A DNA stretch of 64,000 bases, from contig OZ260663.1 of NCBI GenBank assembly GCA_965285935.1, positions 100,812,001 to 100,876,000 of the forward strand, in the 5' to 3' direction. Every line of letters begins with the position of its first letter. The stretch's first letter is position 1. This document shows positions 4,621 through 56,284 of the stretch, piece after piece. Made by a program: the position numbers and the translations under genes. The notes below the pieces were generated by a model that was not told the origin of the DNA, did no database searches, and worked only from the letters and a program-made list of their open reading frames with translations. The stretch is from Ophelia neglecta (Eukaryota).

Positions 4621-4624
4621 ATCC

Positions 4625-32747: not shown

Positions 32748-32969
32748 CTTTCCTAGGTATTAAACCTTAAAGGAGTTCTCGAGGTGAAATGTTTAGCTGT
32801 ATTCCTTGTTTATTCACTTTATCAAAGCGTATTGGACCTGCAGTTATTACTTGTGTATAGGAAGATGTCGGTAGAACCGAGAATATGGCTTGGTGCTTTC
32901 CCTGTCATCAGGTATCATGCAGGTATTAAAGCCACTAATATTCTGCTGACCATATACTCTGCATAAAGG

Positions 32970-32979: not shown

Positions 32980-33024
32980 CAACTTCCTCGTTCGTGGCGT
33001 CGATCCTACATATCTAGAACCCTC

Positions 33025-35420
33025 CATGCACCAAATCTCTGTAAGGGTATACTGCGCTGGAGCCAATGACATGCCTGGGCGCTTTGCCTTAAATATTGTT
33101 GAGAAATCTCAAGGCCGGATCCTTAAATCTTGAGACGGCTTAAGGTCTCAGACAGGGAGTAGATACCCTTCCTAAAAGCTTGCCTCCTTTTATAAGCTAA
33201 GGAGAATGGGACATATCTCAAGGGTGGGGTGGGGGGGGAAGGCATACAGAAAACCTGACATTTGTTGGAGATAAAAGACATAGCTACGAGATACGAGCAA
33301 TTTAAAAGTTAGCTTTAAAGATAAGGTTTGGAGTTGGAGTTAGGATCAAAAATTGGATTTTTTTTACTTAAGGTGTTAACATAACCCTGCTAGTAGCCCT
33401 ATCATAACCCATACTTAACTAATGGTTATCGTATGTGTGTATCTTGCATTTCTCTCACATCTCGTATCAGGTTTTACTATCTACCGTCTCCTCCTCGCAC
33501 GAGGACTATCGGCCTCAGTCCGCCCCTGTAAACACCATACAGGTAATCTGACAGCATTCAAGGCCACCCAGTTATGTTTACATGTGGCAATAATAATCTT
33601 TGGAAATGTGTCATATGTCTGCATTACAGCTAAGGACAACGTACTCATAATGATAATAGGTCCCAACGGTAGTCAATAAACCATGTCTTTCAGCGCTGTA
33701 TTTACAGTTTGAGATCGCCGAGTGTTAGTTTAAACAGTTGATAATACGCCTCTTACAAGTTCTACCGTGTATCAACAAGTCTCTACGCAAGTGATATCTC
33801 TACAAGATGAATATTTTTTGGATTGTCTAACGTTTATATTGTCACACTATGTACAAGTACCGTATATATCTATACGATATTAGTATAGGCAATAAAGCCT
33901 GCATATCAGCATTGATGCTCCGAGTAACAGCCAGCACGCACCACAGTAATATGTCCTCGCGAAGCAAATCGTAATATTTAATGCATTATTTCTGATATTT
34001 GCCTACTGCGAGCTATTCTAGAATAAACCCAATACAATCTCATTCAGCCAACAACGATAAACCGTTCAACTCCACATTGTTGGTCTCAAGTGCTGAAATA
34101 GAACAAAAACCTTATAAGTGCTGCAAATGGCTGCTAAACATACCAAGGGTAACTGTTTCATAGCGGCTATATTAAAACAGAAATTGTCGCAGTCCCGATT
34201 CCCTTTCTTATGCTACGGGCTTCTTTTTTTTTTGGTATTAGCAGTTTTGCTCCCCCTGTCGGCAATCTTCAATTCACCGATCAAATAATACAACTTGCAT
34301 GCATCAAACATGAGAAGCCTCCAGGCACCAAATCTCTGTTAGTGTATACCCCGCTGGAGCCGATGACACGCCTGGGCGCTTTGCGTTTAATACGATTAAG
34401 AATCTCAAGGACGGATCCTTGTATCTTGACACGGTTTAGGTCCCAGACAGGATGTATATACCCTTTCTATAAGCTGGCCTACTTTTACACGCAAAGGAGG
34501 ATTTGGCATATGCAGTATAACCTGACATATTCTGTAGATAAAAGACACAGCTACGACATAGGAGTACTTTAAAAGTTAGCTATATTGTTTAGGTTTGGAG
34601 CAGATGTTAGGATCAAGGAGGGATTTTTTTTTACTGAGGGAGTTAGCATAACCCTATCACTAGCCCTTTCATAACCAAACTTCAGGTTTCCGTATATGGG
34701 TACTTTGCATTTCTCTCGCATCTCATATCAGATTTTGCCATCTGCTGCCTGGAAAGTATCCTCCTATCAAAAGGATTATCGGTCTAAGTCCGCCCCTGTC
34801 TACACCATAAAGGGGATTTCACAACATTCAATGTAACCCAGTTATGTTTACATGTGGTAATAACAATCTAGAAATGTCTGCAATAAAGCCTGCGACTCAC
34901 AGGAAACGTTCGCTTTAGCCCCCGGGTAGTCAATAAACCATGTCTATCAGTGCTGTATTTACAGTTTGAGATCGCCGAGTGTTAGTTTAAACAGTTGACA
35001 ATACGCTTCTTACAAGTTCTACCGGGTATCAGCAAGGACTCCGCAAGTTATATCTCTACAAGATGAATATTTCTAGATTTTCTAACATTTATATCATCAC
35101 TGTATTTGAGTGTACCAGGTAAATCTACATAGTATTAGTTAAGTCAATCAGGCCTGCATCTCAGCCTTGATGTTCGTTGAAACTGCCCGCACCCGCCCCA
35201 AGTAACTCCTCAAAGCCCAGCAAATCTTAATTATTAAAACATTATTTCCCAATATTTGCCTCACGCAAATTTTTTTATATTAAGCCCAAAATAGTCTCAT
35301 TCAGCCAACAACGATAAACCGTTCAACTGCATTTTTGTTCGTCTCAAGTACTTGAATAAGCAAAAACCTTTATAAATGCCACAAATGGCTGATAAACACA
35401 CCAGGATAACTGCCTCATAG
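33025..35420. repeat. Diverged tandem duplication (about 1.3 kb period) of the upstream region of copy 2
   Basis: GCACCAAATCTCTGT at about 33028 and 34325; TGTATTTACAGTTTGAGATCGCCGAGTGTTAGTTTAAACAGTTGA at about 33697 and 34954; TCTCATTCAGCCAACAACGATAAACCGTTCAACT at about 34038 and 35295. Confidence 0.85.
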
Positions 35421-38400
35421 CTGAACACAATACCCTACAGTCTTGAATTAATCTAGTATTTCAGTACTACTTACGTGGCCAAGTGTTAGGCAAAGCCTCT
35501 ATGCGTGAATGTCGGCCTTTGTTAATCCAAATATCTGTGTGTTTCCCACCAAGATATATATTCACGTGAGATATATTTTCAGATTTTACATCAATAGTTT
35601 CACGGTCTTGACAAGCAGTGGCATTTTTTTTTATCTCAATAAATATATTTATGTACATTATAATATAATTTAATAACGTGCCTGATCTCGACATTGTAAA
35701 TGCAGTGATAAGGTATGTTTTCTTCTGGCATCATTCATGCCAAATTTCGGAAATAATATGGTAAATAAACGATAAAAGCAGGGTTTTTATAAGTTAATTG
35801 TATTTTTGTAAGATGCCGAGCTGTATAAACTTTTATAATATCGAATCTTAATGAAGCTTCTTATATATTAATAAGAAATAACACTGAAAACGAGTTACAG
35901 TGACCCCAGGGAAGCTCCTACCTGGTACACCGTATATACCAAGGGGAATGTAAATATCAAACTTGTGGTGAATGAAATGCAGACGACATTCCTGTTTACA
36001 CACGTTGTATATACAGTATGGTTTTCCTTGTATCATATAAACATAACGGGAAGGCCCCCGTGTGTGTGTGTTGGGGGGGGGGGGGGCATTATTCAGGTGT
36101 GTGCATGGTGTTAGAGGATATCGTGTTGTCAACCCAGCATCAGGTGATTAAAAACGTTATTTTGTGTCTTTGCGCAACTGTCTTAAACTATAATATTAAT
36201 GTATTTTATTGTCATTCCCATGATACATGATAAATATACAAACATATATAGTTTTAAGGAAACTAAGTCTAGCTTTTAATGGCCTTTGTAATTAATTACT
36301 ATAGATGTGTATTACTATAATAAACATGTATAGAGTTAATGATTAACCCTCTATAACATGGGCGCAGGAGAACGCAGGAGAACGCAGGATGTGAATTCGC
36401 ACAGTTTACACTGTAAACATTAGGTCGACCATTCTATAATGCAATTGCAGGTGTCATTCAATAGTAGATGTTTTATTAAAGCTTAACTTAGTTGCTGAAA
36501 AGATATTCCTGTGCATATTTCGAAATTTGTGGCCTATGTGCGATCAAGTGATTTCTGTCTGATTTAACCAAAACAAAAACACATGTAATACTGAAATTGC
36601 TGACCCAGGGTTATGATGGCTTTAACGTTTAAGACGGCCATTTAACTAATTTACAGATACATGTTCCGTCAATTTATTCAATTATGACGTACGTCTTGAG
36701 TATTTGTGGAATGCAATCAAGGATACCATCCATATAGAACTCACTCTTAGACTGTTTATATTGTGGTTCATGTTGCTATTATGTTACGCCTTGGTGGTTA
36801 AAGATGGCGCTCATCTCAGGGCTAGGGGCCATGTGCATCTGCTTCATACTGATATAACATCAAATGCAGCAGTGGCCCATGTTCGCATAGTTCTAACATC
36901 AATTATCCTCATTAGTATGATATTATTTTAAATAAGTCTCTTCTCTTGTGTTTTCGAGACAATTTCATGTATGTTCCAAGGATTAAGAGAGAGCTAAGCC
37001 CATGGTAACTTGTCCTAGGGTTTATCTTATATTTGTCCTACGTTGGACACTGACTCTTTGTGTTCGGTACTCTGAGTAACACCATGGGGAATTGTGTACT
37101 ATTTCTCATTAAAAGTGTTGATCAGCATTTTTTTTTATAACCGTCGTAACCAGCCTATTTAACCTTATGGAGCTTGAAACTAATATATTTGGAGGATTGC
37201 GGGTGATGGCATGTTGGTGAGTTCAAGACAATTTAATGGAATACTCTGTTAAAACGATTTTCTTTGTCGGCTGGTTTGCCATCCCCGGCTTTGTTTACAC
37301 ATATGATACGTAAATGCAACCATACGAAATTCTACTTTAGTGGAATATTTATAAATTGCTATGAGATCCATGTAGGCCTCCGGTTTAGCCCAGAAACCAT
37401 ACTGTGTTAGCCTCGATAGTTTCAACATTGGTCTGCTTTTAGGTTCTATCTCTAATAAATTGATGTCAGTTAATTAAAGTACTCGGACAAGGACGAAACT
37501 TAGTGTGTTCCAGTGGGCTCCGGACCAACACGCCCTGATTTTTAATTTGAGAGCGTTGTTGTTAGCATAAGCAGCCGTGCTTGCTGAACTCACCGCAATT
37601 AATAACTCCCTGTGATGAATAATTCTAGATTTTTCACCTTCATTTCAGCAATTAAACAGTTAAGCTTGACAGGTGTTAGTGTGATCAGTCAGGCCTACAT
37701 CGCTGTTTGTACGTCGAAACAGCAAGAACGTAACCTTATTTTTAGAAAAAAGAACATTATTTTCTAGTGTACGCCCAAGTTAGTTTATAGTAATTAAATA
37801 ATACAATCAAATCAAACAATTAAAGATACCTTTTTGTGGAACCATTCATGTGTGTTTTAGCGCCTCAAATGGGGCTATACAAACCTTCATAAAAGCTATA
37901 AATGATTGCTAAGCAGACACAGGCCAACCGACACAGGCAATGCTATCACATTTACTCTACCGCTAAGAATGTATACTTTGTCAAAAATATACTATGATAC
38001 TTATTCAACCCGGATGGTACCAAAAATTTGAGACCAGAGTCATGGCCTATAAGATGATCGCTGCCAATTTCCTAAACTATAAGGAATCAAAGTTGAATAA
38101 TTCATTGCAAAGATGTTGGTTAGGGTTTCATAAATCATGGAAATCTACTGAAGAAACGTTTAAACAAATGTGCATAAATATTACAAGATTTTAAAATATA
38201 CATATATTATTCATATGTACATTCTACTAACAGTTGTTTAATGAATAACAAACTATGAGAATTTATCATGATGCCCTAGTCCTCGATCCTTGGGCTTGGT
38301 CCTGGCCTTCACGCAGATTATATCAACAGCTGTCCTGGTAAATAAACGATCTAGAAAGTTTTCACGTGTTTTGTAATGTCTTGACTGTTGTGTAAGGCAC

Positions 38401-38952
38401 TGTGAATCGCTTATCTTATCCAAGTAGAAATATACGCCTCAAGCGAGTAGAACGGTTACACACAGCTGGGCATGTGGGAAGTCACCTAATTTATCATAAA
38501 ACATTGTGTTTGGAACTTGTTCTTTACTGAAGGTGATGCATGTAGATCACATATTAAGCACTTACGCGATGAATTCACTTGTACACCGCGGTATTCAAAA
38601 CTTGTCAACTGAAGCAAACTTGAGTATGTCAATATCTTAATGCCAAGGCCAATTTATTTACTCAACAATAGGGTATTATTGCCAAAGCTAAGCGAACAGT
38701 AGGGTTACAAACCAACCGGAGGCCATCTCCAAAGCAGTTCCCCTTTATATTTTAGTTGACTTACTATTAACCTGTATGTTTGAAGAAGAAAAAATGCAAT
38801 ACTGTGTGAACTATTTATGTTATATTTATTCCGTCCATCAAATCAAAACCATATGTTACATAAGTTTATTATTATGTCAGTCTCATTAAACTAATAATAA
38901 TAAGTTTATATTTGCTTGATTACTAGTTTGAATATAATATTACTGAATGTAA

Positions 38953-41900
38953 TTACAACACAATAGGACATGGTGTGATGTTTTCATACTTATTATTGTA
39001 TATATTGACGTCTTCATACTCGTCATTGCTGACCAACTGAGGTAAAGTAAGTGACTCGTATTGTCCCATGCCGCTGTTTCCTAGAAATAAATTCATATTA
39101 TATTAGCATGAACATATGAACGCATTTTAACGTTAACGTTGTCTTTAAGCATGATCCAGATTCAGTTAAAGACTCAAACTGAATTAGGAGCAAGGGGCTG
39201 TTTCTGGTACTTTAAAATATAAAAACCAAGAAACTTGCACTGACGGGATATAATGGAAAAGGAGTAAATGAAAAAAAACGTCAAAGGGTACTTGCCATAC
39301 TGAAACACATTATTTGAAATCGGAATTTCATAAACATGGACATTTTCAAGTGGTACATCCTCCGTCTGGGTCTTTGACACATTAATATCTTCATACTGGT
39401 CGGGTTGGTGGTCGCAGGGCACTTCAATGGCTGGCTTTGCCGATCTCCTTCTCTGAATAAACATTCTGGATACAACAACATTTTAATTTAGCGTGAGTCT
39501 CCTTATTGACCTATATACAAGCAATATGTTCATAGAGTATTACACAACTTTACATGTACCCTTATATGCTGCATGCTCTGGTTTTTGGTGTTCTCGTTAA
39601 TCAAGTACAAATTTATTACATAGCTATGATGCAATTGTGCAAAACATTACAACATGACCCCTATCCCTAGGTCGAGCGACATAGATCACTATTTGAATAC
39701 ATTATTTTTTCAATGTGAATGTGTTGAAATAATGGCAACTAGAAGCTAAACGTGGGAAGTCTAAGAAACTAAATCACTGTACATTGACCCGCCTCAACCT
39801 TGATAAAATCATTTCTAGGATTTCGCAAGTCCAAAGGCGTGTGTAATAACTAAAAAAAATGGCGGAATATAAATATTTGGGAAACGGAAGGGTTCTGTTT
39901 TATAAAATCCACATAGGTTTTGTTTCCGAGTAAGGATGAGCAGCAATCCAGTTCATTTCCCAATGTTCTTTAACACCATGTGAAGCTCTCGTAGGCGACG
40001 CTGAAAGTCTTTGGTAGTACATGCTGTACATCCTGCTATGAATATTTGTTTTATTGGCTCGTGTGCATTGAGGTTACAATTATTTGCTCTCGAAGGCCCG
40101 TACTTAAAGATCTTTCGTGTTAATTTCTGTAGACCCTGCTATGAACTGTTGTTTATATTAGCTCGTGTGCATTGTGCTGGCAATTATTGTATAGGTTGAT
40201 CCAAAATAAAAGTATGAATGTTATTAGTTTTAAGGAATTCAATATGTCAAACAGTTTCGAAACAAATCCAACATCATTTTGCGTAGTCAATTCAAACAAA
40301 GACAAAGCGCTTATGGAGAATTGATAACTAAGGGTGTACTTCTGGAACGTCTAGAACGAGAGCAGGAAGTTGGACAATCTTGTAACGTAAATTGTAATAA
40401 AACTTTGCATTTATGATTTCTAGGCACACCATTATTGAAACAACTCGAGTCAATACCAAAGAGAAAAAATATTAAGAATTGTCTTAAATCCGTCCAAATT
40501 TATCAGCAACCATCAGCAGAAAAAAACATAGTAACGGAATCATGTACAAAACTTTAATTGATATCAATTGCAAAAGGAAACAGTGAATATTAATCCATGA
40601 TGTCAGCCAGGGCACAGAACAATCAGAGCTAGTAACCAAAGTTGGAAATATGCACGAGGATAGCCTATGATGGATTAGGCTCTCACTTAAATATGAGACT
40701 ATGGATAGCGACCTACGGAACAGAAGGATGTAAAAGATCCTTCCCAAAAGGATATAGTTTTGAATATTCTCAATAATGTAATAATTGGTTAAATCAACAA
40801 TGGGAATCAGTTACTCTTTTATAGTGAATAAGATTGCATTAGTATGGAGCAGGTACCCACAGTCCCTAACCCTAGGATGAGAATACACCACTATAAGCCC
40901 CAGAGAAAACTTGAAACGCAATATCATGCGTCTATTTTTCAAAAACTTTAATTGAAGGCAGGCAGTCTACTTCCATCAGATTCTTCTCTGTTTCCTGTAT
41001 TAGGGACATTTACAATTTTCTTTCTAAGCTGATGGTTACCGATGAAGTCGAGTTCACTACCTCAAAATTCACCACTAGGTTTATATTTATAGCCAGAAAA
41101 CTGCGTGTTATTACAAAAGCAGAGGTAGCTGTAAATGTTACGTGTGAACTGATGAAAATGCAGTTAATATCCTCGTCTCTAAAGTTTATTTTTAAAATTG
41201 TACGTGGTTCTACTTGGTAAGACCCACTTTTAATAGAGTATATGAACTAGAATATAGGCTACGTGTGAAATATGCCCTAAAACTGTATAAATAATCACCC
41301 AAGAACACCCTAGTGATATCCATCCCTTCACACCTTCATCAATGGCAAGACCCTTCCAGTTGTCTCAATAGATGTCTCAAATATAAAGACTTAAATATTA
41401 AACACACTCACCCTAGACAAACCAACAATCCAGATACTACTGCCAGAAAGACCACCCCGGCAGCGGTAACTCCTCCGATTACTGCCACGCTTACTCCTGA
41501 CCCCTGATATGGCTTATTGTACGGTATAGTAATACCAGTAGATGGGGATGTGGCTACTGCTACGATGGTGGTTTTGGTGTTGTCACTAGTTGGTAATGTC
41601 GTAGATAGTTTAGCTCTTGACTTGGTTGTCATTGTTTTTATAGCCGTTAAGGTTGTAGTTTTTCCCTTTGTCGTGGTCGACGGGGGTTTCTTCGTAGTAG
41701 GTACTGCTGGAAAAAAATACCGGAATGGTTACCCAGCAGACGAGTGAAATCATTTGAAATAAGAGCAGCAAGTGATCTTAATATCAGTTAAGATAACGGA
41801 AAATGTGATTAAAAAGCAATTAAGTTGAAAAGATAAAAGTTGAAATGACTGTTAATGTTAATAAATAGTCCAGAGGTTTTCATGAGGAGGGAGACCACCA

Positions 41901-44900
41901 TACAAATGTGGTGGTTGACGATTTGAACTAGGCATTTCGAGAGCTTTTGGTAGACTGATATTAGAGACAGGGGCAAGCCATGATAGCAAATACTTTAGAA
42001 GTTAGATGAAATATGGTAAAGACGTGTATAGCGACTCATTTGATCTACTTGCCCACAACATGTGATCAATGAAGGTATCTCATCATAATTGTCGATAGGT
42101 CATAATTCATAGCTCTCGAGGAAGGTAATTTGTTTATAGTATAATGAGTAGTAGACATACTAATAACGGCCCATCCCACCTCTATCCTAATATTTCACTT
42201 TACAAAAAGAATTTTCTAATTAACTGAATAATAATCATGGTTAGAGTATCCAAGCCTCAAGAATCCGCAATACTTTACCATAGGCCATATATATGGTATA
42301 GTCTTAAACAAGGGAGAAGAAAATATTACTTTGCATTTCGCCTACGACCTTATTACAGCTGTTAATTTACATGCAACTCTTACTGTTTGTTTTCTTGTTA
42401 AGTTGATTGATTCGATCCTAATTTATATGACATACATTCTATAATTTGTAATTAATGCAAGGAAAAATTTCTTCTAAAAAAGGCTTGACAAATTGAGGTG
42501 TTAACCATGACCGAAATGACAAAATGGTCTTTTTACACAATGACCGATGGAGCCACGAAGACATTCAAAGAGAAATGTACAATTTCTTCCTTTTAAACTT
42601 TTAACTTTGGGAAGTAATCTAATTAACGCTATTTTTAATTATTGTTAGGGTGGGTAAAAGATGCAAAGCAGATCACAGGCCGCCGAAGGTAGAAATCCGC
42701 ACCGCAGTTTTGGCGCATTCCTGCCCTCGCAAATTATGGGTCTCAGTTTAGACAAGCGTCCCGCCACAGTGGATGCCCGGGTTTTGTCAATGCTTGTGTT
42801 CCACACCCCACCGGCATCTGATAGAAATCAGGATTGGCTTGAGAAACAGCAATACTGACCTGTGCGGGGTAGGACGCCCACTGGCGCTGCATATTGCACA
42901 TCCCAATGAGTGCAAAGTGTTACAGTTTTAGAGACCTAATAATAATAATAATATTGGCATATCTACAGCACTCAGTATCCTATGTATGCCATGTTCAAAG
43001 GCCCTTCACAATAAAATATAATATGGATTAAGATATAGGAATTCTTTATCAAATAGCAGAAAGATTTGGAAAAAAGGGTTATTCCATTTTAAAAGATGTG
43101 CAATTAAATACCAAGTATCCTTGATAAACAAGATCAGATACATAAGCATTATCGGTCTTCATAGGCTAGTGGGTCTTGGGCTTTGAACGCACCTACCGAC
43201 TCAGCAGATCTTGCATGAGCTGGTAAAGAATTCCAGAGCCTGGAGTCGTGTGATCTTAAAGATCGATCACCAGCTCTAGAGAGTTTTGTTTTCAGTACCA
43301 CTACTAGTAATAGCACTACTAGAAGTAGTAGTACACGGTAGATCACGAGTTGGTTCGTATCTTTGCAGCTCTTTAGAGACGTACAAGGGGGCATATTCAT
43401 TCAGGTCCTTGTACACAATGGACGGAAGCTTAAAATCGACCGGTGTAATGTGTTCAAGTATTTCGTTATGGTTAACCAATTTAACAGCAAAGTTTTGCAC
43501 TTTCTGAATCTGTTTAAGCTAAGCTGCAGAGACACCACACAGCAGAGAATTGCAAAGGTCAATGCAGGATGCCACAAATGCCTTTACCTACTGCTTCGTG
43601 GCATCAGTTGTCAGAAATTTTCTGATGCGTCCAATATGACTCCCAAGTTCTTAAAACGCTGGTTCAGAACGGCTACAATCTTCCAGGCGACTGAGACGCT
43701 AGAGGCCGGACTTTTGGAAAGCATTTGGTGTTAGCCAATTACAAGTACCTCTGTTTTATAAGTGTTTTGATTTGAGAAAATTTAGTGTCAAACAGTTCTT
43801 TACCTCGTAGAGTCATTCGTCCACCCAGGAGACATGGTCCGCAGATTTGGGTTTTCACAGCCAGAAATATCTGATTATCATCAACGTATGTGTTAAGGCC
43901 GAAGCCATATTGTTGGATGGGCAAACCGAGAGGAAGAATGTATATGAGAAATAATAATAAAAAGAAACTGTCGAGAGCCGACTGCAGTCATAGGTAGCGT
44001 TATTAGTTACCCAGATGGGGCGGGACGAGGTGTGGGGGTCGGGGGTGTGGGTGGTAGATCGATGCTAGTTCGATTGTACATAACAAATTTATGAAACGAT
44101 ATGACAATGTTTACCTCTGGCTGCTGTGGCTTCTAAAGCGTAAGTGTATCTATACGCCCCTTGATGACGAGGTATACAGTCTGTAGTATACACGGTATCC
44201 GATGTAAGGGGCGGCTCTGTCTGAGATGTCTGTCCGACTTTCCTTCCACCTCCAGGTCACAGAGTCAGCGGTCACGGATACCGGAATCGTCTGAGCGTAA
44301 TCGGAGCTGCCAAACAGCATCTTGGCTGAATAAGTGTCAAAATATACAAGGATTGAGTAATAAAATAAGCTTTTAATATTTTGCTTATAAGATTTAGTTA
44401 GTCATATACAATATGCCCTACGTATTCTGACGTCACACTGGTCCCCTGCCAGCCACTCTTCGTTGTTGTCGTAGTAACAGGCTTCACAGGCGCCGTTCTG
44501 CTGGTCACACACACGCTTACACCGGGAGTTACATCCCCGGCGACAGTCAGATTGGTGAAACCCACCTGGACATTCTAACAACAGCATTAATTTAATCAGT
44601 TAAAGACTAATCAGACAAAAAGGGATTTACATCAACAACTATAACTTTAAAAACCCACTTTAAATGTTTGGGATATGTTATCACCCAGAATTACAACTAC
44701 AGCTACTACAACTAACTTCTGTTTTTGCATGAAGTATGGACTTAAATATTAATTTATACTACCAAAGTGACATTACCGGATGTCGTCTTCACCGATGTAC
44801 TTGTAATGGGCACTTCATCAGATGTAAAGACTGAGAAGGCAGTGGATGAATGCTCAGGAGGTGTCATGGCTGTAGTCACTGATACACCAGATGTTACCTT

Positions 44901-47671
44901 TTTATCTGAATTATACAATGTGTATCAATGAACGCGTTTTATGGGCCAATATAGGTATATATATATATCTCTTTAAACAATCTCTTTATGCAATTACGAG
45001 CAGATCACTGTCTACTGGCTGTTATCAGACATTGTCCAAAATGTGGTGTTTCTAAAAGTGGTCTGTTCCGATGTGATGGCTGTTGTTGACATGCCGTTTA
45101 TGTCAATCGTTGTAGTTGTTGGTGCAACCGTCGTTATACCAGCAAATGAACGTTAAGGAATGCCAGACGTATGTTTCATGTATTCACTAATGAATATGTA
45201 TGTACCAAAATAAATTTGCATTAGATGCAGGCTGTGAGTGAATTTTCGTATCTGATTTCTTAACTTCTTAAAATGTTACTGTGGCTTGCTTTATATTGAT
45301 CAAATCCAAATGTTTCACCTGACAATGTCCAGGCCTCCAGATGCGACGATTTGTACTTATAGTATGTTTCCGGACTTTCTACTTTCTGTCCAGTGGAGTT
45401 GATCCTGTACACAGCCAGATCAAACTGATACCTAGTGCCAGCGTGTAGCCCTGATACAGTTCCCTGCTGCCAGTCTGTTTTATTGTATTTGACGTCTGCT
45501 CCCAGGGTCCAACCCGACGTGGTATGTAGTCTGTAGTATATGTGGTATCCGATGTACGGAGCGGCGCTGTCTGAGATGCCTGTCAGACCTTCCCTCCATC
45601 TCCAGGTTACCGAGTCAATGCTAACAGATAGAGGTGCCGTATCAACAACGTCAGGCCCTCCAAACCGCATAACGGCTGGAAAAATATGTGTGATTCTTAT
45701 ATTTCTTGTTAATAGTAGCACAAACATTATTCACAACATAATCGAGATTTATGGTTGATTTTGATTTTATCAAGCTCCAATTTTTAATGTAATCTAATCT
45801 TCTACTAGTATAGCTTAATAGATACCTGCAATCTAAGGTGTAATGCTAGCTTAGAGACCCATAGTATATTTATTGCGCTGGTTACTTACGTATTATGATC
45901 TCACACTGGTCCCCTGCCCGCCAGTAACCACTCACATAGAAGTCACAATCAGTACACGCCCCGCTCTCCCGGTCACAGCCATCCTTACACAGGTTGTTAC
46001 ACCGTCTTGTACAGTCAGGGCCGTAATAAGAAACCGGGCATTCTGATAAATATACATAGCAAGTGTCTTATATTTATTCAATAGTTTATAAAAACAAATA
46101 GTGTACTTTCATTGCAATTAAGGGGTATAAGTGGAAATGTCCTACCTGTATAGTTCGTTGTGGCAATAAGGGTATACCCCCTTGATGTGTAATATGTGTT
46201 GACACTTTCTACTGGCTCTTTATCAGTTATTTTCCTGTAGACAACCAGATTAAACTGGTACCGTGTCCCAGGCAGTAGTCCTGATACAGTCCCCTGTTGC
46301 CACTCTGTTTTAGAGTAACGCACGTCAGCTCCTAGTAACCACCCCCCTGATGACGTTGTATACATTCTGTAATATACATGGTATCCGATGTAAGGAGCGG
46401 CTCTGTCTGAGATGTCTGCTCCCTCCTTCCATCTCCACGTTACCGAGTTTGTGGTCACTGATACCGGACTAGTCGGGACCTCGTCAGCAAAGCCGAAATT
46501 CATCTTAGCTAGTAAAATGAGAATAAATCACCTTGAAACAAAGGAGGTATTTTCTTTAAATAATGTTTATATTTGCTTCATTCTTTGCATACAACGAGTC
46601 GAGTGTGAAAAACCAACAAATTCCGATTTTGTTACAAGAACGATATATATTGATAGACAACACTCACGTATTATGATATTACACTTGTCCCCTGTCAGCC
46701 AATAACCAGTCCCCTGGATATCACCACAGCCATCAGTACACACCCCGATGTCCCTGACACACAGTCTGACCTTACACTCAGGGTTACAGACGTCATGGCA
46801 TTCAGAGGCATCCCTGCAGGCTGGAAGTAACGAAAAGCACGTGGTAGCATGGTTTTACCTGATCTGCGTCCGATGGAACACTCATCTTAAGGAGTAATAA
46901 TTAATTGATAAAATGTTACACGTGTATAATCACACTGTAGTCAGGTACACACACCAGGGAACTGGGTAAATACAATTCATTTTTTTAAAGCTTAATATGC
47001 TACCTGTTTTTCCGAATAACATTGACGCCTCGTGCCAAAAATATCTAACAATGTATATACTACATTCTGTTATGTATGTATGAGGATTTTCACATTCTCT
47101 TATGTGTACCAGTTCACATCGGACTGAGATGAAATAAAAGTACTAGCGTATAAAGCTTTTTCTTCTCTTTATCCCCCCCCCCCCCCCTTGCAATATCCAG
47201 TAATTTAATATACTGCAAAGAATGATCCGCCCCCATCCTAGTTGCTTGTTTACGGCCAACACGAGGCCTATTACATACCTCCTTTTTCTTCGAAAAAGGT
47301 GGGGGCAAAAAATAGCATGGAAATAAACAGGAACTGGAATAAACGTACCAGAAGGCGGCAGGCACGGAGGAAATAATGCTGATAAGTGAATCTCGTTACT
47401 ATTATGCGCATTGGATAATATTCGCTACGGTTCTAATCGGGCAGAATGTCGCACAAGCATCAAAATAGAGGAATTATAGCTGAGCTCTTTGACCGCTAAT
47501 GAAAGAGTCGCGGCTACTATATTATAATGGTGTACACCACGATAACACTAAGTTTTGGCTAAAGTTGAAAAGCGCGTCCTACACTGCTCTAGAGTGATAT
47601 AAAATTGATTTACCTTGTGTTTCCGCCAAGGCCAGGAAGAGCATCGATAGACATATTTTCATAGCTCCCAT
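38953..47671 (-). CDS. Copy 3: EGF/FN3 single-pass receptor with no phosphatase and a tyrosine-motif (ITAM-like) cytoplasmic tail; about 652 aa if the broken third FN3 exon is skipped
   Basis: Exons: 47614-47671 signal peptide; 46668-46820 EGF; 46146-46508 FN3; 45890-46042 EGF; 45319-45675 FN3; 44777-44905 S/T; 44422-44574 EGF; [44115-44325 frameshifted FN3]; 41412-41706 Thr-rich stalk plus TM VAVIGGVTAAGVVFLAVVSGLLVCLG; 39296-39465 MFIQRRRSAK...QYEDI...VYEIP, with a GC donor; 38953-39080 GQYESL...DEYEDVNIYNNKYENITPCPIVL*. Phases are consistent throughout, and no PTP exons lie between 33 kb and 41 kb. Confidence 0.72.
42937..43950 (-). mobile_element. 5-prime-truncated, degraded LINE (L2/CR1 group) within an intron of copy 3
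   Basis: RT segment IYILPLG...YVDDNQIFL (YVDD at 43877-43888), the typical ORF2 C-terminus GDRS...RLWNSLP...FK, and a (TTA)n 3-prime tail at 42937-42953. Confidence 0.82.
44115..44325 (-). pseudogene. Frameshifted remnant of the third FN3 exon of copy 3
   Basis: 211 nt versus 360 nt in copy 2 (28273-28632). An internal deletion joins two CCCC tracts at about 44160 and gives ...YTSSSRGV*. Splice sites are still AG/GT. Confidence 0.8.
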
Positions 47672-49591
47672 TTTTCGTAGGGATTGAACCTAAAGGGAGT
47701 TCCACTGGTGAAATGCTTCGCTGTTTTCCTTCTTCGTTAACTTTTACCAAAGTATATTAAGGCTCTGCATGATAAAAGGTGTCGGTAGAAATGTCAAATA
47801 TGACTCGGTGCGTTCCCTTTAATCCGGTATTACGCAGTATTAAACTCAATATTCTGCTGCCCAAATAATCTCCGGTAGAGTGGGGATTCAAAATTTGTAC
47901 TTCCTTGTTTGTGACATAGATCCAACCAACCGAGAACGCTTCATTCACCAATTTCTATACGTGAATATCGCGCTAGGGCAAGGGATATGCATTGGCGCTT
48001 TGCCTTAAGTCTGGTTAGCACGTTTCAAATGCGGATCCTTACCTTTTAACAATAATTCGTGAAGCAGTGAGGGCGTAGACAAACTTCACAAAAACTTACC
48101 TCTGTTGACGAGGTAAGGAGAATGGGGATAACTGTAAAATCCAGATACGAGACACCGATAATCAGATATGATATACAAGGAATTTAAAACGTAGCCGTTT
48201 AATGTAGGTTTGTGGTAGGGGTTAGGCTTAAGGATGGAAAGTTTCACTAAGGTTGTTTGCTAAACCCTACCCTCCTCGCACATAGATTATTGGCCTCAGT
48301 CCGCCCCTGTCTACATAACAAAGGACATCTCACAGCATTCAAGGTAACCCAGCAAAATTCATATGTACCTTTAGAAATGTGTTAAACGTCTGCGATAAAG
48401 CCCAGTAAACTGTCTCATAGAAAACATCCATTATTGCTCCCGACTGAGTCATTGAACCATGTCTTACAGTGATGTATTTACTATTTAAGGGCGCCGAGTG
48501 TAAGTTTAAGCAGCCGTACTTGACAATACGGTGTACGGCGTGTTAGCAAGAACTCACCGCAGGTAACATCTTTATATGAATATTACTAATAGTTTCTAAT
48601 AATTATTTCATTTGTTTGTAGCAATAGAAACATTTAGAACAAACAATGAATGTGCAGTAAAACATCTTTTCTGATCTTGGCATAGTTAACGCTGTGACAA
48701 GAGATATTCAAAATTATCTTCTTGCATCCTTCATGCCAAAGTCCGATAAAACATGTAGTCAATAAACGATGATTTTCTTTATAGTTAAATGTACTTTTTA
48801 TAAGATAAATATCTGTATTAACGTATATAGTATCGTATCTTAACGGAGTATCTTATATATTTATTAGAAATCACATTGAAAACGATATACAGTGACCGCA
48901 GGAAAGCTCCTTCCCGGTACACCGTATATACCAAGGCGTCTGTATATTTAAAGCTTGTGTTGAATTGAAATGCAGACGACATTCCTGTTTGAACACGTTA
49001 TGTATATATGATGACATTGGTTTTTTTTCTTGTATCATATAAAGAGCAGGCGCGGGAGGGGGGTTACCATGTAACCCAGCAATAAATGGCAATTTGAGTA
49101 AGTGTACCGGAAACTAATGATTATCCGACTAACATGCTGTCGTACTTTTTCATTGCAAGGATCGGGCCACGTCAAGTGTTTGATTGAAAGAGTAATGTAG
49201 TTGCTGAATGTGTAGCAGTAACCATATTTGAATTTGAACCATATTTGAAGTCATTAAATGCACAAAGTCTGTCTTTAAAGGCTATATCCTGTGTTGTCAT
49301 AGCAACGCATTTACCAGTTACAACTAATTTTGAAACTTGATGCAACAAAGAAACTTAACTGGTAACTGGGTGAATCAAGTGGCGGCTGATATTTATCTTT
49401 ACCGGATGATATAGTGAATGTAATAGAAAGTAGGGTAATATGCCTATTCTATAACAGCCGTTTCAAATCAGCAATGTTGCTCCATCCTCACTAGTCGGAG
49501 CACCGATTTCTAGGTTGCAGGAAACTAAATAAATCTCCTATCGTTTACATGTTAAATGAACATTATTCGACATCATTTTTCACATATTCAA

Positions 49592-49896
49592 TGTGGCTGC
49601 AGTAGGAGAAACGATGACTAGGTTTATGTTTCATACGGCTTTATTGTTTCTTACATGAATGCCATGGACACCTTGGGTACCGTGAAACTGTAACAAATAA
49701 ACTCACGATATATTCTTTACATATTGCACAGAGATCACAACACAATTACATATGATAACATATACAAGTAAACGATGTAACGAACCTCTTTGGCCTCTTA
49801 CAGTTCTGGCTCCTACATACATTTATACTGTCGACCGTATCGCTGTCGACATCACCGAGAACACATGCACTGTCGCCGCTCACATAACGACAACCG
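49592..49896 (-). repeat. Truncated 3-prime LTR of the BEL element (305 bp remain)
   Basis: Identity to the other LTR ends at ...GACAACCG (49896), where integrase coding sequence abuts directly. The integrase C-terminus, the PPT and about 250 bp of the LTR are deleted. Confidence 0.92.
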
Positions 49897-52800
49897 GTAG
49901 TCAGGATGGATCTGACAGAGCGAATCTGTCGCTCCCAAACGCCACCAAAATGACTAGAATACGGTGGGTTCATCTGGAAAGAGAAGTCACAGTTGTTGCT
50001 TAGGAGAAATTGCTTGATACTACTGTGGTTCATCTCCTTCCAACATTCAGAAATTTCGCGTTTTGCTCCTACGAAATTTGTGCCCTGATCAGACCGCAAT
50101 ACGCGAATGGGTCCACGGAGGGCAATGAAACGACGGAGTGAATTGATGAAAGATGAGGTATCTAATGATGGAACAACTTCGATATGGACGGCTCTACACG
50201 CTAGACATGTATAAAGCGCCCCGTACCTCTTTACGCGCTTACGACCTTCAGTTACACACCATGGACCAAAGAGATCTACGGCACAGAAGGAAAAGGGTGG
50301 AGCAGAATCCAATCGATCCTTGGGGAGATCGGCCATTATCTGAGAGACTGGCTGACCACGATATTTTCTGCACAGGACACATTTGTGAAACAGCGGAAGA
50401 ACAACCTATGACCCAAAACCCACTATTTCGGATCATGTTAACGGTCATGCCACGGCCTTGGTGCTGTACAAGTTCATGACAGTATTGGATAATGAGGCGT
50501 GTAGCCAAATGCCTCCTCGGTAGGACCAGTGGAAACATTTCGTCAAATGTCAAGTCCGCTCGTCTCAAGCGACCACCTACCCTTAAAAGGCCGTCTTCAT
50601 CAATGAAAGGGTCCAATTTATACAATTGACTGCCTTTCTTCAAGACTGCGTGGCGTTCCTTTACACGAACTCTATCGGTTTCGGAGGCAGAAACATTAAA
50701 AGAAGACAGAACCCTCAGTTCAGTTTCGAAGGCTTCGGCTTGGGTCAGCCGAACAATCTCCCTCCCAGAAATGGAGATATCTTCTGGTGTAACGGGTAAG
50801 TTTGCAGGTTTCTGTCTTGATCGTGCTTTATATTTCAGACAAAGTGCGATGGCTCGTTTTGCTTTGAACCAGTCTGAGAAATAACCAAGAAGGCTAGACA
50901 CGGACATGATCGGATAGTTGACTGACAACGAGTGCACTTTAACTGCCTTGACTTCGGGATCGGAGACTGTGAATTCGAGATCCTTCCCGAGAGATTGAAC
51001 CGGAAGCTCTGGCTTCCACAAAAAGGGGGGGCATCTGAGCCATATGGAACTTTCAACAAACTGCCTTGTGGACATACCTCTCGACGCTTCATCGGCCGGA
51101 TTTTCACCCGTCGCTACGTAACCCCATTGGCATGGCTTGGTCTGATCCCTAATTTGTTGGACTCTATTGGCTACAAATGTGTGAAATCTCTTTGCATCAT
51201 TTGAGATATAACCTAGCACAATCATACTGTCCGACCAGAAGTACTCCACAACGTTTTCATAATCAAGCTCTTTCCTTAGAATATTGCTGACCCTTACAGA
51301 TACGAGAGCAGCGGTCAGCTCCAGTCGTGGTACGGTGATCACCCTCATAGGCGCTACCCGAGCATTCCCATGCCGAATGAGCAATGAACTCGCCCTGTAC
51401 CGTCAATCAAGCGAAGGTAAGAACATTGACCATAGCCAAATGTACTAGCGTCGGAAAAGTGATGCAACTGCACCCCAACACAATCGAAACTGCGGGGACA
51501 AAACGATCTATTGATTTGGAGTGAGTCAAGGAGAAACAGACTTTCACGCCACTGCTCCCACAGCATTCTGCACTCTTGGGGAATCGTTTCGTCCCAGCCT
51601 GCGCCATCTCGACAGAGCGACTGCAAAATCGACTTTCCGACTAAAACCACAGGTGTTATCAGACCCAGCGGGTCGTAGATAGAACTGACTGTGGACAGAA
51701 CTCCTCTGCGAGTGAGGGGCCTATCCTGCAGGGTTATTCGGAATTTTATTGTATCTGACTCAATACACCAATAGAGACCGAGGGCTTTCTCGATGGGGAG
51801 TGGATCGTTCGACAGTACATCGAATTCTTGAAGACCACAGGCCCGGTCTTCCGGCCTCACAGCATCAATCAATTCCCTAGCATTGGAAACGATTTTGTGC
51901 AAGCGTAAACCACCATTAGCACAGAGAATTTGGGCTTGTTTAACCAATTCGATTGCTTCATCCACTGTTGGGAGAGAAGCGAGGCCATCATCAACGTAGA
52001 AATTGTGGCGAATGAAATCTGCGGCTGGTCGACCGAACTGCTCTTCGCCGTCGTCAGCCAACCGTTTCAGACCAAAATTGGCGCAGCCTGGGGAGGATGA
52101 TGCGCCAAACAAGTGGACAGTCATACGGTACTCCACAATCGCCTTGCCGTCAAACCACAAGAAACGCAAGTAATCTCGGTGCCTTGCACTGACTGAAAAC
52201 TGGTAAAACATTTTTTCAACGTCACAAGAAAAGGCAACCGAACACTGTCGAAACCGACAGAGAACTCCTATGAGCGTGTTTGTCAGATCGGGTCCTGTAA
52301 GGAGATGACCATTCAAAGATTCGCCCTTGAATGAGGCACTGCAGTCAAAAACCACCCTCAACTTACCCTTATTAGGACCATACACAGCGTGATGAGGAAT
52401 GTACCAAACGTGCCCTGGGGTGCCGTCAGACGTGACTCTTTCAGCATATCTCCGTTGGATCATGTTTTCAGTGAAATCACTCTACTCCCGGTCAGGTTTC
52501 AATCGCATGAGCCGGCGCAAGGCTAGGTGTTTGTTGTTTGGCATAATCGGGTCGTCTTCCTTGAAGGGTAGAGGCATTTCATAGTGTTTATCTCCCCTTT
52601 TGATTATCCCCTTCGACATCATAAATAAGAACTGACTGTCTTCAAAGGAAAGAGGAGGGCCACACTTGTGGTCATCGAAATCCATCTCAAGGATGCTAGT
52701 GACCCTTTCAGTGAGGACCTCATGTACGCTAGTTCGCAAAGTAATAGCGACAGAAGGTAGCTCACTCGTGATGACACAATGGCTCGAACCAAAACCATCA

Positions 52801-55800
52801 CTGTCAACTCCCCTGTTATCTACGATGCCAACTATACCCCAACCCAAATCAGTCCTTATTGCAAAGGGTTCATTGTACAAAGGGGGTATGACATCACGAG
52901 GAGCCAAGGCACGGGAACAGTCATAACCAATGAGGAGACCGATGTGACAGTCACCCAGTGGCATAAGAGAATCGACAATTTTCTCCAAGTGAGGCCATTT
53001 ACTGGCCATTTCAGGGGTAGGAATGTGTGTCCGATCTGCTGGCATAATTTCCCTGGTATATGTAGAGGGCAGCTGTAATTTCAGATCACTGTTGTAACCT
53101 CTAACAACTAAACCGTCTACACGGCAGCTTCGGATGGGTTGGTTAACACACGACATTGTTGATAGGGATAAGTTCACTGGAACACCTGTAATTCCCAATT
53201 TCTCAGAGGTATTTTCTAATACAAATGTGGAATCAGACTGTGAGTCTAACATAGCGTAGACTAACATTTCACGATTTGGTTCGGATTCGTGTGATAACCA
53301 TACGGGGACGATCATAGTGCTTTTTGAGCGAACACTCTCAGACCTATGAATACAGTGAGCCGTTGAACTTGCTTTAACCTCACCTGGCGAGGTTGGTGTT
53401 GTCCTTTCAACACCAGATGACACATTTCCCGGTGAATCACCGTGGAGCAGAGTGGGATGCCTTTTATGACAAGTGTCGCAAGTATCCCGATTCTTATAAA
53501 ATTTGGATCTATGACCGAACTGCAGACAGCCAAAGCAGAGCCTCTGGTCAAAGACAAACTGCCTTCTCTCTTGTAGAGACAAGGCAGACAATCTTCCACA
53601 AGAGCTAGTTTTATGTGTTCCATTACACATAACACATAAAGGTATATACGACGGAACCGTACTGTCATTACTTCTGTGATCAGCGGTCTGCTGCGTAGGC
53701 CTTGAATGTACAATTGATGCGAGCACCTTTTTGGATAAACCCTGCCCTTTATCTGACGAACGATCCTTATCACAGGGAGGAGAGGACCCTCCACCTTTTA
53801 GAGCCTGGAACGAAGTAATGGGGTCACAAGCGATCTCTGCTTCCTGCACTACAAACTCTACAAATTCCTGAAACAAGGGAAAGGACTGGGCTTCCCTTTT
53901 ACCAGTGGCAACAATTCGTGCCCATCGAACAATGACCCTATCGGGGAGTTTCATTAACAATTTCTGGTTTTCCTGTTCATCATTCAGAACAGTGAGCGAG
54001 CGTATAGTCCGCATGGCTACCAAACATTGACGTAAAAAATCTGCAAATTGGCGCAGAGCGGTCCCATCTCTGGGCTGTATCTTAGGCCAAGAAGAAAGCC
54101 TATCTCGAAAGGCCTTTGCTACAATGAAAGGATCTCCGTATCGCTGATCGAGCAAAGTTTTAGCTTCACTATAAGCATCTTCGGTAGACAAAATAAAGCA
54201 ACCCTCTACAACACTTCTGGCCTCTCCACCAAGATAACAATTTCTGGTTTTCCTGTTCATCATTTAGAACAGTGAGCGACCGTATAGTCCGCATGGCTAC
54301 CAAACATTGACGTAAAAAATCTGCAAATTGGCGCAGAGCGGTCCCATCTCTGGGCTGTATCTTAGGCAAAGAAGAAAGCCTATCTCGAAAGGCCTTTGCT
54401 ACAATGAAAGGATCTACGTATCGCTGATCGAGCAAAGTTTTAGCTACACTATAAGCATCTTCGGTAGACAAAATAAAGCAACCCTCTACAACACTTCTGG
54501 CCTCTCCACGAAGATAACGCTTGAGATAATGTATTTTCTCTTCTTGGGGGATATGTCTATGGTCAACCAAGGCAGAAAAGGCTGATTTCCACGCAGGATA
54601 TTGCAGGGTATTCCCTGAGAACACACCGGGCTCGGGAGGGGCCAGCCTATTCAACGACAACTGTTCTGCCAACAGACCTACCATGGCCTCGTTACTCAAA
54701 CCTTGTTGAGATTAGGACGAATGACCAAATGGACATTGCGGAGGGTTTATCAATGGAGATTCTTGCCTGGACGACATCACTGGGCCAGACACGGAAATAG
54801 AGGGAACAAGCGGTGCATATCCATGATAGGGCGCACCTGGCTGAAATTTTGTGAAATGACCAACAGAGGATTGCAACAAGTGTGTTCGTGAAGACTCTTG
54901 TCCAGGAAACGACACTTGATTTGACAACGAACTTGAAAGACCAGGCGGTGCATAGCTATGAAAGGACACAGCAGCTTGGCTAGATGCTAGTCCAGTCATA
55001 GTCGACGATTGCTGCCCATACGTCGGCTGCGTATGCACGGAAATTGTAGAGGAATACATAGTTGACGCCACCGAAGACAAAGTCGGTGCCCTATCGCAAG
55101 ATTTAGACGCAACTGTGGCAGTCGGTTGCATTGTCAGAGTCCGAGCAATCTGATAAGTACTCGAGCCAGCGGAGGGAGTTGGGGCAGGTTCCATCGAAGA
55201 CGTTGATTGGGCAACCTGGTACGATACTGATGCCGCAGCTGCCACCGGACATTCCCCAGGAGTACGTGAGGGAGCAGGGTTTGGATATGTGGTTTGAGAA
55301 TCTAAAAACTTGGATAAAATGATAGATTTATTTTCCACCTCTGACACATCATCCTTTCCCTTACCCAGAGATGCTAAGTCATCGTATTCCTCAAAGGTAT
55401 CTATCACTTTGAGTTGGGCTTCGGTCTCTTCCATTTCCCTCATAGTCTGTAATTGCTCTAAGGCATATTTTTGCTCTGACTCTGCCTTAAGATATTTTGA
55501 TTTTACTTTCAGGGACTCAGAATGCATAGCCAGTTCTAAACGTTTTTGTGAAGTGCTACTAGCACGAGAACTTTTCCTAGACTTTAGGCTCCTGCATCCT
55601 GAGCCTTCACGGTTTGACTTGGGGGGAGGAAAATACAGTCTACCTTCATATACGAGTTTAGACAAGGTACCCCCCGGTATATCAGGTATATTTCCTATGT
55701 CTAAATTGTCCAGTGGACGCCCTAGATTATTTCTATATTCTAGAAATTTCTCTGCCCTGACTGGACCTATTCCATAGATGGTTAGTAAATCATCTTTCGT

Positions 55801-55818
55801 GATGTCATTCACGTCCAT
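49897..55818 (-). pseudogene. Disrupted BEL gag-pol polyprotein (HhH - Gag/DUF1759-like - zinc knuckles - protease - RT - RNase H - integrase)
   Basis: ORF pieces 54712-55818, 54169-54699, 52482-54263, 51354-52463, 50248-51384 and 49746-50336 are collinear. Interruptions: in-frame stops at 54712-54714 and 52482-52484, a 280-bp duplication, and frameshifts near 51370 and 50385. Protease motif is AMLDSQSDSTF. Confidence 0.92.
53955..54518. repeat. 280-bp direct tandem duplication inside gag
   Basis: 53955-54234 is repeated at 54235-54514, with TAAC microhomology at all three junctions and about 6 substitutions between the copies. Confidence 0.93.
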
Positions 55819-56284
55819 GATTGAATGTATGAGTTAGTAAATGGTTGTCACTGTGCAAATGAAGATGAATGAAATCGTTGTTGGTTCCCACAAGTACCTT
55901 TCAAATGGGGTTCGCAAATGAAGGACCAACAACGAAACACAGTATTAAAGGTGCAACACAGTATGAAAATGCCCAAGGAATTGAACTCAATGTCCCTTGG
56001 AAAAGTCATGCATGAAAACTCGAAGTACACACGTGAGCACAATAACAAATTCAAATACAACATGCACATGTTCATTCAAGAGAATACGAAGACTATCAAT
56101 CCATTTAATGTAAAACGATGAAAATGAATTTAAATCACAATAAATTACAGTTCAAACAAGTCCGCGAGAAGAAAGTGCGCCATGCTAGAAATCACAAAAT
56201 GGTGGCTCTGCTATCCTTGACGGAGGAATCCAGGTAGCATACGACACAGCGTAGACGTCGTGAAGGAGTGGCATAGAGTTTCAC

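Follow-up and report, generated by a model that had tools for sequence, protein, structure and literature searches.

What is to be made of a gene whose promoter region and ectodomain exons are those of a receptor tyrosine phosphatase (RPTP), and whose downstream exons encode an unrelated transmembrane (TM) segment and a tyrosine-rich tail? This question is raised by a locus in a 64,000-nucleotide stretch of DNA from Ophelia neglecta (assembly GCA_965285935.1, contig OZ260663.1, positions 100,812,001 to 100,876,000 of the forward strand), which was analysed as a whole and is called the window here. An earlier note on this DNA had taken the hybrid (copy 3) and an intact neighbouring RPTP (copy 1) for a paired-receptor system with one ectodomain and opposing outputs. 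The structural half of that interpretation holds, since an RPTP-type promoter and ectodomain do lie upstream of an unrelated TM segment and tyrosine tail, beside an 88%-identical RPTP. The DNA anatomy, the loss of the protein tyrosine phosphatase (PTP) half, the exon-like TM and tail segments and the intact ectodomain exons are established. As for how copy 3 arose and what it can make, we favour, with a probability of about 0.45, a chimeric gene formed at the junction of a two-gene duplication, which would be productive only if its broken exon 9 (E9) is skipped.

The window consists of AT-rich animal DNA (35-42% GC) with zero N runs, and carries a minus-strand tandem array of RPTP genes whose units are 84-99% similar to each other. 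Copy 3 is situated 24 kb from copy 1 in the following order:

~4.9-15.2 kb, minus strand: copy 1, RPTP gene
~19.8-32.7 kb (19800-32750), minus strand: copy 2, RPTP gene
38.95-47.67 kb, minus strand: copy 3, RPTP-type 5′ half with foreign 3′ exons
49.6-56.8 kb: BEL/Pao long terminal repeat (LTR) retrotransposon, between copy 4 and copy 3
56.8 kb to window end, minus strand: copy 4, 3′ part only

The 5′ half of copy 3 is that of an RPTP gene

From the alignments, the 5′ half of copy 3 can be read exon by exon against copies 1 and 2 (E, exon; serine/threonine-rich, S/T-rich):

47672-49592, minus strand: 5′ flank shared with copy 1, putative promoter region
47671-47614, minus strand: E1, ATG and signal peptide; donor AAG/GTAAAT, phase 1 end; 18/19 residues as in copy 1
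46820-46668, minus strand: E2, first EGF-like module with an 8-Cys pattern; phase 1-1; 45/50 residues as in copy 1
46508-46146, minus strand: E3, FN3-1 (Pfam fn3, E=1.7e-7); 109/120 residues as in copy 1
46042-45890, minus strand: E4, second EGF-like module; 46/50 residues as in copy 1
45675-45319, minus strand: E5, FN3-2 (Pfam fn3, E=1.8e-5); one copy-3-specific in-frame 6-nt deletion
45140-45016, minus strand: E6, relic S/T-rich exon; acceptor AG lost (CAT)
44905-44777, minus strand: E7, S/T-rich (mucin-like) linker; phase 1-1; splice sites conserved in 3/3 copies
44574-44422, minus strand: E8, third EGF-like module, intact, 8 Cys; donor TAC/GTAGGG, phase 1 end; 45/50 residues as in copy 2

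The flank of copy 3 aligns by blastn with that of copy 1 at 93% identity (47216-48536 versus 14739-16049) and at 97-99% (48816-49592 versus 16058-16973), and there is a single mismatch across the 89 nt upstream of the copy 3 ATG. Over the 399 codons of the shared ectodomain, the amino acid identity of copy 3 amounts to 87.7% with copy 1 (350/399) and to 82.5% with copy 2. The earlier note had called the ectodomains of copies 1 and 3 the same almost residue for residue; the sharing of promoter and exons stands, but at this divergence near-identity does not.

Exons E1-E5 are collinear with those of copies 1 and 2, every ectodomain exon after E1 is phase 1-1, and the overall architecture is that of copy 2, with a third EGF-like/FN3 unit that copy 1 is without. 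The term EGF-like is used for the Cys-rich modules on their cysteine pattern alone, Pfam being silent on them. As in an RPTP, there are a signal-like exon 1, two Pfam fn3 exons and a single 27-residue hydrophobic segment followed by RRR. To judge from its acceptor, relic E6 is probably not spliced in. This S/T-rich exon is disabled in another way in each copy: the acceptor was lost in copy 3 (45016-45140), the donor was lost and the acceptor kept in copy 2 (29331-29468), and most of the exon was deleted in copy 1 (12533-12601).

The similarity to other copies ends at 44061, beside a broken exon

Similarity of copy 3 to any other part of the window ceases at 44061 (blastn), in the intron after the third FN3 exon, where three features lie close together:

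44325-44115, minus strand: E9, third FN3 exon, disrupted relative to copy 2 by deletions of 140 and 9 nt
44061-44010: homology breakpoint and C-rich tract, below which no RPTP copy is matched (blastn, sequence)
43950-42930, minus strand: degenerate, 5′-truncated non-LTR retrotransposon-like fragment, in the intron before the TM exon

The deletions in E9 cause a frameshift and a TAG three codons on (near 44150), while both its acceptor and its donor are intact. What is left of E9 (210 nt) has 90% identity with copy 2, and the last 170 nt beside the junction diverge from copy 2 by 20-25%. Alternative in-phase donors within E9 that could avoid the stop are weak sites only. The breakpoint is about 100 bp from the retrotransposon-like fragment, which has YVDDNQIF and GDRS..LWNSLP in shifted frames, an (ATT)n tail and no Pfam match, and which we take, on its motifs, to be of the non-LTR class.

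The PTP exons and 3′ flank common to every complete copy (2143-4673, 17306-19291, 57182-59486) are both missing from copy 3. A tblastn search with all copy 1 cytoplasmic exon peptides revealed no PTP relic between 33300 and 44100, with nothing below E=0.06, and blastn gave no match there either. A PTP catalytic domain after the TM segment, with its WPD loop and HCX5R P-loop, is present in copy 1 and absent from copy 3. The 8-kb segment 36041-44061 is single-copy within the window and unrelated to the RPTP unit; at its far side, 36041 joins smoothly to the upstream repeat structure of copy 2. The blastn break and the negative tblastn result bear out the claim that copy 3 switches, past about 44060, to an unrelated stalk/TM exon and two tail exons without any PTP domain.

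The stalk, TM and tail segments look like exons

Below the breakpoint, the following segments would complete the gene:

41706-41412, minus strand: S/T-rich stalk and TM exon, 295 nt; phase 1 in, phase 2 out; TM helix ~41494-41414
39465-39296, minus strand: tail exon 2, 56 residues; RRRS stop-transfer, QYEDI and VYEIP; GC donor ATG/GCAAGT
39080-38953, minus strand: tail exon 3; QYESL, EYEDV and KYENI; stop TAA at 38955-38953
38870-38825, minus strand: two AATAAA signals, 83 and 123 nt past the stop; weak evidence, in a region of 23% GC

The stalk/TM exon and both tail exons are open in the frames given, with compatible phases and splice sites. The TM exon is preceded by a pyrimidine tract and a CAG acceptor and followed by a donor that matches the consensus at 8/9 positions (AGG/GTGAGT). 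Its phases (1 in, 2 out, with the end just after the helix) are the same as those of the TM exons of copies 1 and 2, and its phase 1 start matches the phase 1 end of E8. Since S/T-rich coding sequence runs right up to a strong acceptor, and a strong donor follows, the TM exon looks internal and in need of upstream exons. The GC contents of the TM, tail 2 and tail 3 exons (0.46, 0.42 and 0.39) exceed those of their flanks (0.23-0.36 overall, with 0.34-0.36 around the TM exon and 0.34 around tail exon 2), and verified exons rise likewise. The codon-usage scores of the TM exon and tail exon 3 are above those of 137/138 and 136/138 null open reading frames (ORFs), respectively, although this score discriminates poorly between frames, is mostly compositional and lends weak support only. 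We also asked whether the TM exon derives by divergence from that of an RPTP; p was 0.0045 in a raw shuffle but rose to 0.14 when stalk and TM compositions were kept, and this derivation was rejected.

Summed without E6 and E9, the exon lengths yield a single frame of 652 codons (1956 nt), resting on added exon lengths and phases. Two of the junctions proposed earlier are only partly supported. The phases are compatible across 44422>41706, but this junction silently bypasses E9, whose splice sites are intact. Across 39296>39080 both the frame and the motifs fit, but a GC donor is needed; it matches the consensus at 7/9 positions, compared with 4/9 for a GT five bases upstream, the frame of which loses the last three motifs. 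By eye, no other exon relics and no signal-peptide exon were seen in the translated open frames of 36041-44061, and neither a signal-peptide-like nor a Cys-rich exon is visible in those of 41707-44061. A 103-bp tandem pair (39985-40188) lies in the TM-to-tail intron.

The tail carries a cluster of acidic tyrosine motifs

The tail is acidic and 98 residues long, and contains five YE.[ILVP] motifs, compared with 0.04 expected per 98 residues from the six-frame background; no 98-residue window in the six frames equals this number. All five of the motifs listed in the earlier note (QYEDI, VYEIP, QYESL, EYEDV and KYENI) are indeed present. Because these motifs are spread over both tail exons, the two pieces appear to belong together, and the last-exon frame given by the GC donor is supported. 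An acidic pYE[E/D/N][I/L/V] sequence is the optimum for Src-family SH2 domains, and pYxN is of the Grb2 type.

The spacing of YESL-x10-YEDV and YEDV-x6-YENI had been likened to an immunoreceptor tyrosine-based activation motif (ITAM). The likeness extends to a relaxed form, with V at +3 and spacing up to 12, but not to the canonical ITAM (Yxx[LI]-x(6-8)-Yxx[LI]), for which a regular expression found no match in either tail exon. Nor does the copy 3 tail contain an immunoreceptor tyrosine-based inhibition motif (ITIM, [SIVL]xYxx[ILV]), an immunoreceptor tyrosine-based switch motif (ITSM) or NPxY, and the TM segment (41494-41414) is without the charged residue of an activating paired receptor. 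The lack of a canonical ITAM, of an ITIM and of a charged TM residue weakens the case for a paired-receptor function.

Searches for relatives of the tail were negative. A HMMER search with tail exon 2 (56 residues) against 1.84e9 representatives gave 0 matches at E<=0.001, a result that excludes only close relatives (~65%+ identity). The tail 2 ORF had no match in a word-indexed protein collection searched through a length filter that conceals full-length proteins, and neither had the FN3-1 ORF, so that fragments of this lineage seem to be absent there. Nothing meaningful came of searching PDB sequences with the EGF-like exon or either tail exon. The sole metagenome match to tail 2 was rejected: it lies on a bacterial contig (locus L001, CENV01040191.1, with hisS, prfA, lnt and metK), where the word HQPDQYED occurs by chance in an apolipoprotein N-acyltransferase-like ORF, a false positive of the pattern scan. 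With the lineage apparently absent from the databases, the lack of a tail homologue says little.

Constraint on copy 3 and the state of the other copies

We have checked whether the ectodomain exons have been kept intact in copy 3. The 1.36 kb of ectodomain coding sequence (E1-E5, E7 and E8) has zero stops and zero frameshifts, and all 13/13 essential splice dinucleotides of these exons are kept. Copy-3-specific indels number 7 in 946 intron columns (6/7 not a multiple of 3), against a single one in 1167 exon columns, which is 6 nt long and in frame. About seven exon frameshifts would be expected and none is seen (Poisson P(0) ~6e-4). Substitutions on the copy 3 lineage are 18 synonymous to 27 non-synonymous, which is more synonymous than neutral (p=0.04, omega ~0.56), and the pairwise dN/dS of the ectodomain is about 0.4. 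With dN/dS below 1, the EGF-like and FN3 modules show no trace of the diversifying selection that an allorecognition locus would be expected to undergo, which weakens the switch interpretation.

Copy 1 is, as had been claimed, a tandem phosphatase with two PTP domains, of which D1 has WPD and an intron-split VVHC/SAGVGRTG and D2 is divergent; it is the only copy within the window with an intact-looking catalytic D1. Several disabling lesions are found in copy 2: the acceptor of its FN3-2 exon has changed from CAG to CAT (~30036), its third EGF-like exon has an in-frame TAG (within 28894-28739), and its D1 P-loop exon (~22750) lacks both the AG acceptor and the first codons of SAGVGRTG. Despite an excess of synonymous change over the neutral level in its exons, copy 2 is probably a pseudogene. 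Copy 4 is 86-93% identical to copy 2 (blastn) and lacks, at 61388-61475, some 770-880 bp equivalent to 22581-23345 of copy 2 and 7473-8352 of copy 1, which hold the D1 WPD/HC and P-loop exons.

The identities among the copies are mosaic (44040-47760 versus 28200-32850 versus 12200-15290). Relative to copy 1, copy 3 diverges by 1-2% in the flank and E1 and by 5% in E2 and E3, whereas its introns I2 and I3 are 7.5% from copy 2 and 15-17% from copy 1. Compared with copy 2, exon E3 diverges more (14%) than the introns around it. This pattern points to short-tract gene conversion or to exchange with copies outside the window. Copies 1 and 2 share a 76-bp block, 88% conserved, within the intron that precedes the TM exon (12101-12176, 27511-27586); it has stops in all frames and is non-coding.

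Origin of copy 3 and competing explanations

What history could place these exons together? Copy 4, an intergenic region and copy 3 parallel copy 2, an intergenic region and copy 1, so that the single duplication of one unit is the simplest history. A unit made of copy 2, the intergenic region and the 5′ part of copy 1 would have been duplicated to give copy 4, the intergenic region and copy 3. One breakpoint would lie in the RPTP intron just past the third FN3 exon, at 44061, and the other in an unrelated gene next to it, upstream of the stalk/TM exon. Foreign stalk, TM and tail exons would thereby have come to lie downstream of the promoter, signal peptide and EGF-like/FN3 exons of the RPTP. 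The damage to E9, some 50-100 bp from the junction, may be collateral of the same event. A second 36-44 kb segment with the parent gene is predicted upstream of copy 4, outside the window.

This arrangement resembles that of chimeric genes born by exon shuffling, when a tandem or segmental duplication with breakpoints in two genes joins the front of one gene to the 3′ exons of its neighbour. As in these, there is a sharp breakpoint (44061), a parent copy nearby and foreign 3′ exons in compatible phase; since the modules are all phase 1-1, frames are kept. It differs from them in that a frameshifted exon was left at the junction and that the gene from which the 3′ exons came lies outside the window. 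The product would be a type I receptor without phosphatase, in which the signal peptide is followed by two pairs of EGF-like and FN3 modules, the mucin-like linker, a further EGF-like module, the stalk, the TM helix and the 98-residue tail. Upon clustering of this receptor, Src-family kinases could phosphorylate the YE.[ILV] sites, and SH2 proteins would then dock there (Src/Syk-type, or Grb2-type at YEN). We put productive expression of the hybrid a little short of even odds.

Several observations weigh against a productive chimera, and some of them would be expected if copy 3 were instead a dead, 3′-truncated pseudogene in a birth-and-death array, whose transcripts, if any, include E9 and terminate, and whose TM and tail segments are orphan exons. 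E9 combines its frameshift and TAG with good splice sites; spliced in by default, it would cut the frame short, and the predicted outcome is a secreted stub or nonsense-mediated decay. Relic E6 is dead, and the array is decaying, with copies 2 and 4 already disabled in like manner (lost acceptors, a TAG, missing D1 catalytic exons). GC-AG introns, one of which the tail needs, make up under 1% of introns (PMC7072748), and the codon score of tail exon 2 is not distinctive. No tail homologue turned up among the 1.84 billion representatives, the word-indexed collection and the metagenomes searched.

The tests for constraint are themselves weak or confounded. The probability of seeing no stop under neutrality is only 0.11, the damaged copy 2 has a similar synonymous to non-synonymous ratio, and the exon/intron substitution rates of copy 3 (0.039/0.055, ratio 0.71) indicate much weaker constraint than those of copy 1 (0.040/0.133, ratio 0.30). 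Active gene conversion can keep a dead copy looking intact; moreover, the constraint data do not date the truncation, and if it is recent, the intact exons are uninformative on the chimera. On the other side, a dead copy would have to have escaped every frameshift and stop in 1.36 kb of coding sequence while its introns gained seven indels, to have retained 13/13 essential splice dinucleotides, and to be followed by 196 TM and tail codons that stay open although the DNA is AT-rich, keep their splice sites intact and contain a motif cluster that is not random. We regard a pseudogene as rather unlikely, albeit as the weightiest of the rivals.

The TM and tail exons might also belong to a separate gene, either as the 3′ end of one that starts beyond copy 4 or as a ~173-residue adaptor that starts at ATG 41632. 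This ATG is in frame and has an A at -3, the 36-44 kb segment has no relation to the RPTP unit, and a short S/T-rich N-terminus followed by a TM helix, RRR and a Tyr-rich tail is an adaptor-like layout. On such a stand-alone reading, the short extracellular part, one TM segment and Tyr docking motifs including YxN resemble those of LAT, PAG, LAX and SIT; a juxtamembrane CxxC palmitoylation motif is lacking here, and homology to them is not detectable. However, S/T/K-rich coding sequence extends 25 codons upstream of ATG 41632, to a strong phase-1 acceptor, inspection of 41707-44061 by eye showed no signal-peptide-like or Cys-rich exon, and the sole same-strand upstream exons within 15 kb are those of copy 3. 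A gene spanning copy 4, the LTR element and copy 3 would need an intron >22 kb. A separate gene is improbable on these grounds. Still less probable is an assembly artefact at ~44061, that is, a collapse or mis-join behind which the real copy 3 continues into normal RPTP exons. The setting of the break does favour such an error: the units of the surrounding tandem array are 84-99% similar, the sequence there is C-rich and of low complexity, and a retrotransposon fragment lies ~100 bp away. Against this, N runs are lacking throughout the window, the other end of the segment (36041) likewise passes smoothly into the copy 2 upstream repeats, and the private E9 deletions and 20-25% divergence from copy 2 in the last 170 nt suggest an old, natural junction rather than an assembly slip.

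Other repeats and elements in the window

The BEL/Pao element (49593-56841) encodes DUF1759 gag-like, Peptidase_A17, RVT_1 and rve domains and has TG...CA ends, with a target-site duplication ATTCA(A) as judged against the empty site in the copy 1 flank (16967-16973). Its LTR parts 49587-49899 and 56280-56592 are 99% identical, meaning that the insertion is recent; the low-coordinate LTR shares only ~310 of ~556 bp. The pol region is split into several ORFs and has a 284-bp internal tandem duplication (53955-54518). An exact-match look-up of its ORF protein gave no record, and the closest relatives of the element, in bivalves, echinoderms and fish, are only 45-47% identical. A 1.1-kb direct repeat (75%) is present upstream of copy 2 (33016-34164 and 34313-35421), and a dispersed element that includes a '...KQECRLHF...' ORF is found 5′ of each of copies 1, 2 and 3 (16058-16394, 35824-36041 and 48816-49151, respectively).

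Relation to known receptor systems and meaning

How close does the array come to a paired-receptor system? Copies 1 and 3 do have the layout of a paired-receptor cluster, with ectodomains that are alike at the level given above, lie 24 kb apart and are followed by unrelated downstream sequences. Like KIR, LILR, SIRP, Siglec and CD200R, they are clustered recent duplicates with similar ectodomains and different cytoplasmic parts, in an array marked by birth-and-death evolution, pseudogenes and gene conversion. In the vertebrate paired families, the ITIMs of the inhibitory member recruit a phosphatase, and the activating member has a short tail, a charged TM segment and an ITAM adaptor. Here, in contrast, the putative inhibitory partner, copy 1, is itself a tandem-domain RPTP, and copy 3 has its own 98-residue Tyr tail and no charged TM residue, ITIM or canonical ITAM. 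The ectodomains differ as well, being EGF-like/FN3 rather than Ig or lectin. Literature searches turned up nothing pertinent on RPTP-based paired receptors or on an EGF/FN3 RPTP expansion.

Among classical tandem-domain RPTPs, the nearest solved relatives of copy 1 (PTPRE, PTPRA, LAR/PTPRF and PTPRS) resemble it in the signal peptide, FN3 ectodomain, TM segment, D1 with WPD and HCSAGVGRTG, and divergent D2. Copy 3 departs from this class in having no PTP domain, although it shares the promoter region and ectodomain exons. An alternating EGF-like/FN3 ectodomain is not known from any vertebrate RPTP subtype.

The nearest invertebrate precedent is Draper, in which one ectodomain is joined to opposing tyrosine tails. 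Alternative splicing yields Draper-I, whose ITAM is read by Src42A and Shark, and Draper-II, whose ITIM recruits the phosphatase Corkscrew (PMC4503800). Copy 3 resembles Draper in kind in its Cys-rich EGF-like modules and acidic Tyr motifs. But Draper is one gene spliced alternatively, and here there are two genes; and the ectodomain of Draper, CED-1 and MEGF10 consists of EMI and many EGF repeats without FN3, whereas copy 3 alternates FN3 with Cys-rich modules. The NPxY and the defined ITAM of the Draper tail are both missing from copy 3, which has no Pfam EMI or EGF match and no detectable sequence similarity to CED-1, Draper or MEGF10.

Taken together, a working switch, in which copy 1 and copy 3 with its Src/Syk-type docking tail are co-regulated from near-identical promoters, bind the same ligand and give opposing outputs, as in immunity or allorecognition, with the tail possibly a substrate of copy 1, is highly doubtful, though it is conceivable that copy 1 opposes signalling by copy 3. 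If the copy 3 hybrid is not expressed, it would be one of the usual losses in a tandem gene array that evolves by birth and death. If it is expressed, it would be a signalling receptor caught while being rewired by one duplication, with the sensing part kept and the phosphatase swapped for a phosphotyrosine docking tail. It would then also offer a way to paired receptors that involves neither Ig domains nor vertebrates and has an enzyme, not an ITIM, as its inhibitory arm.

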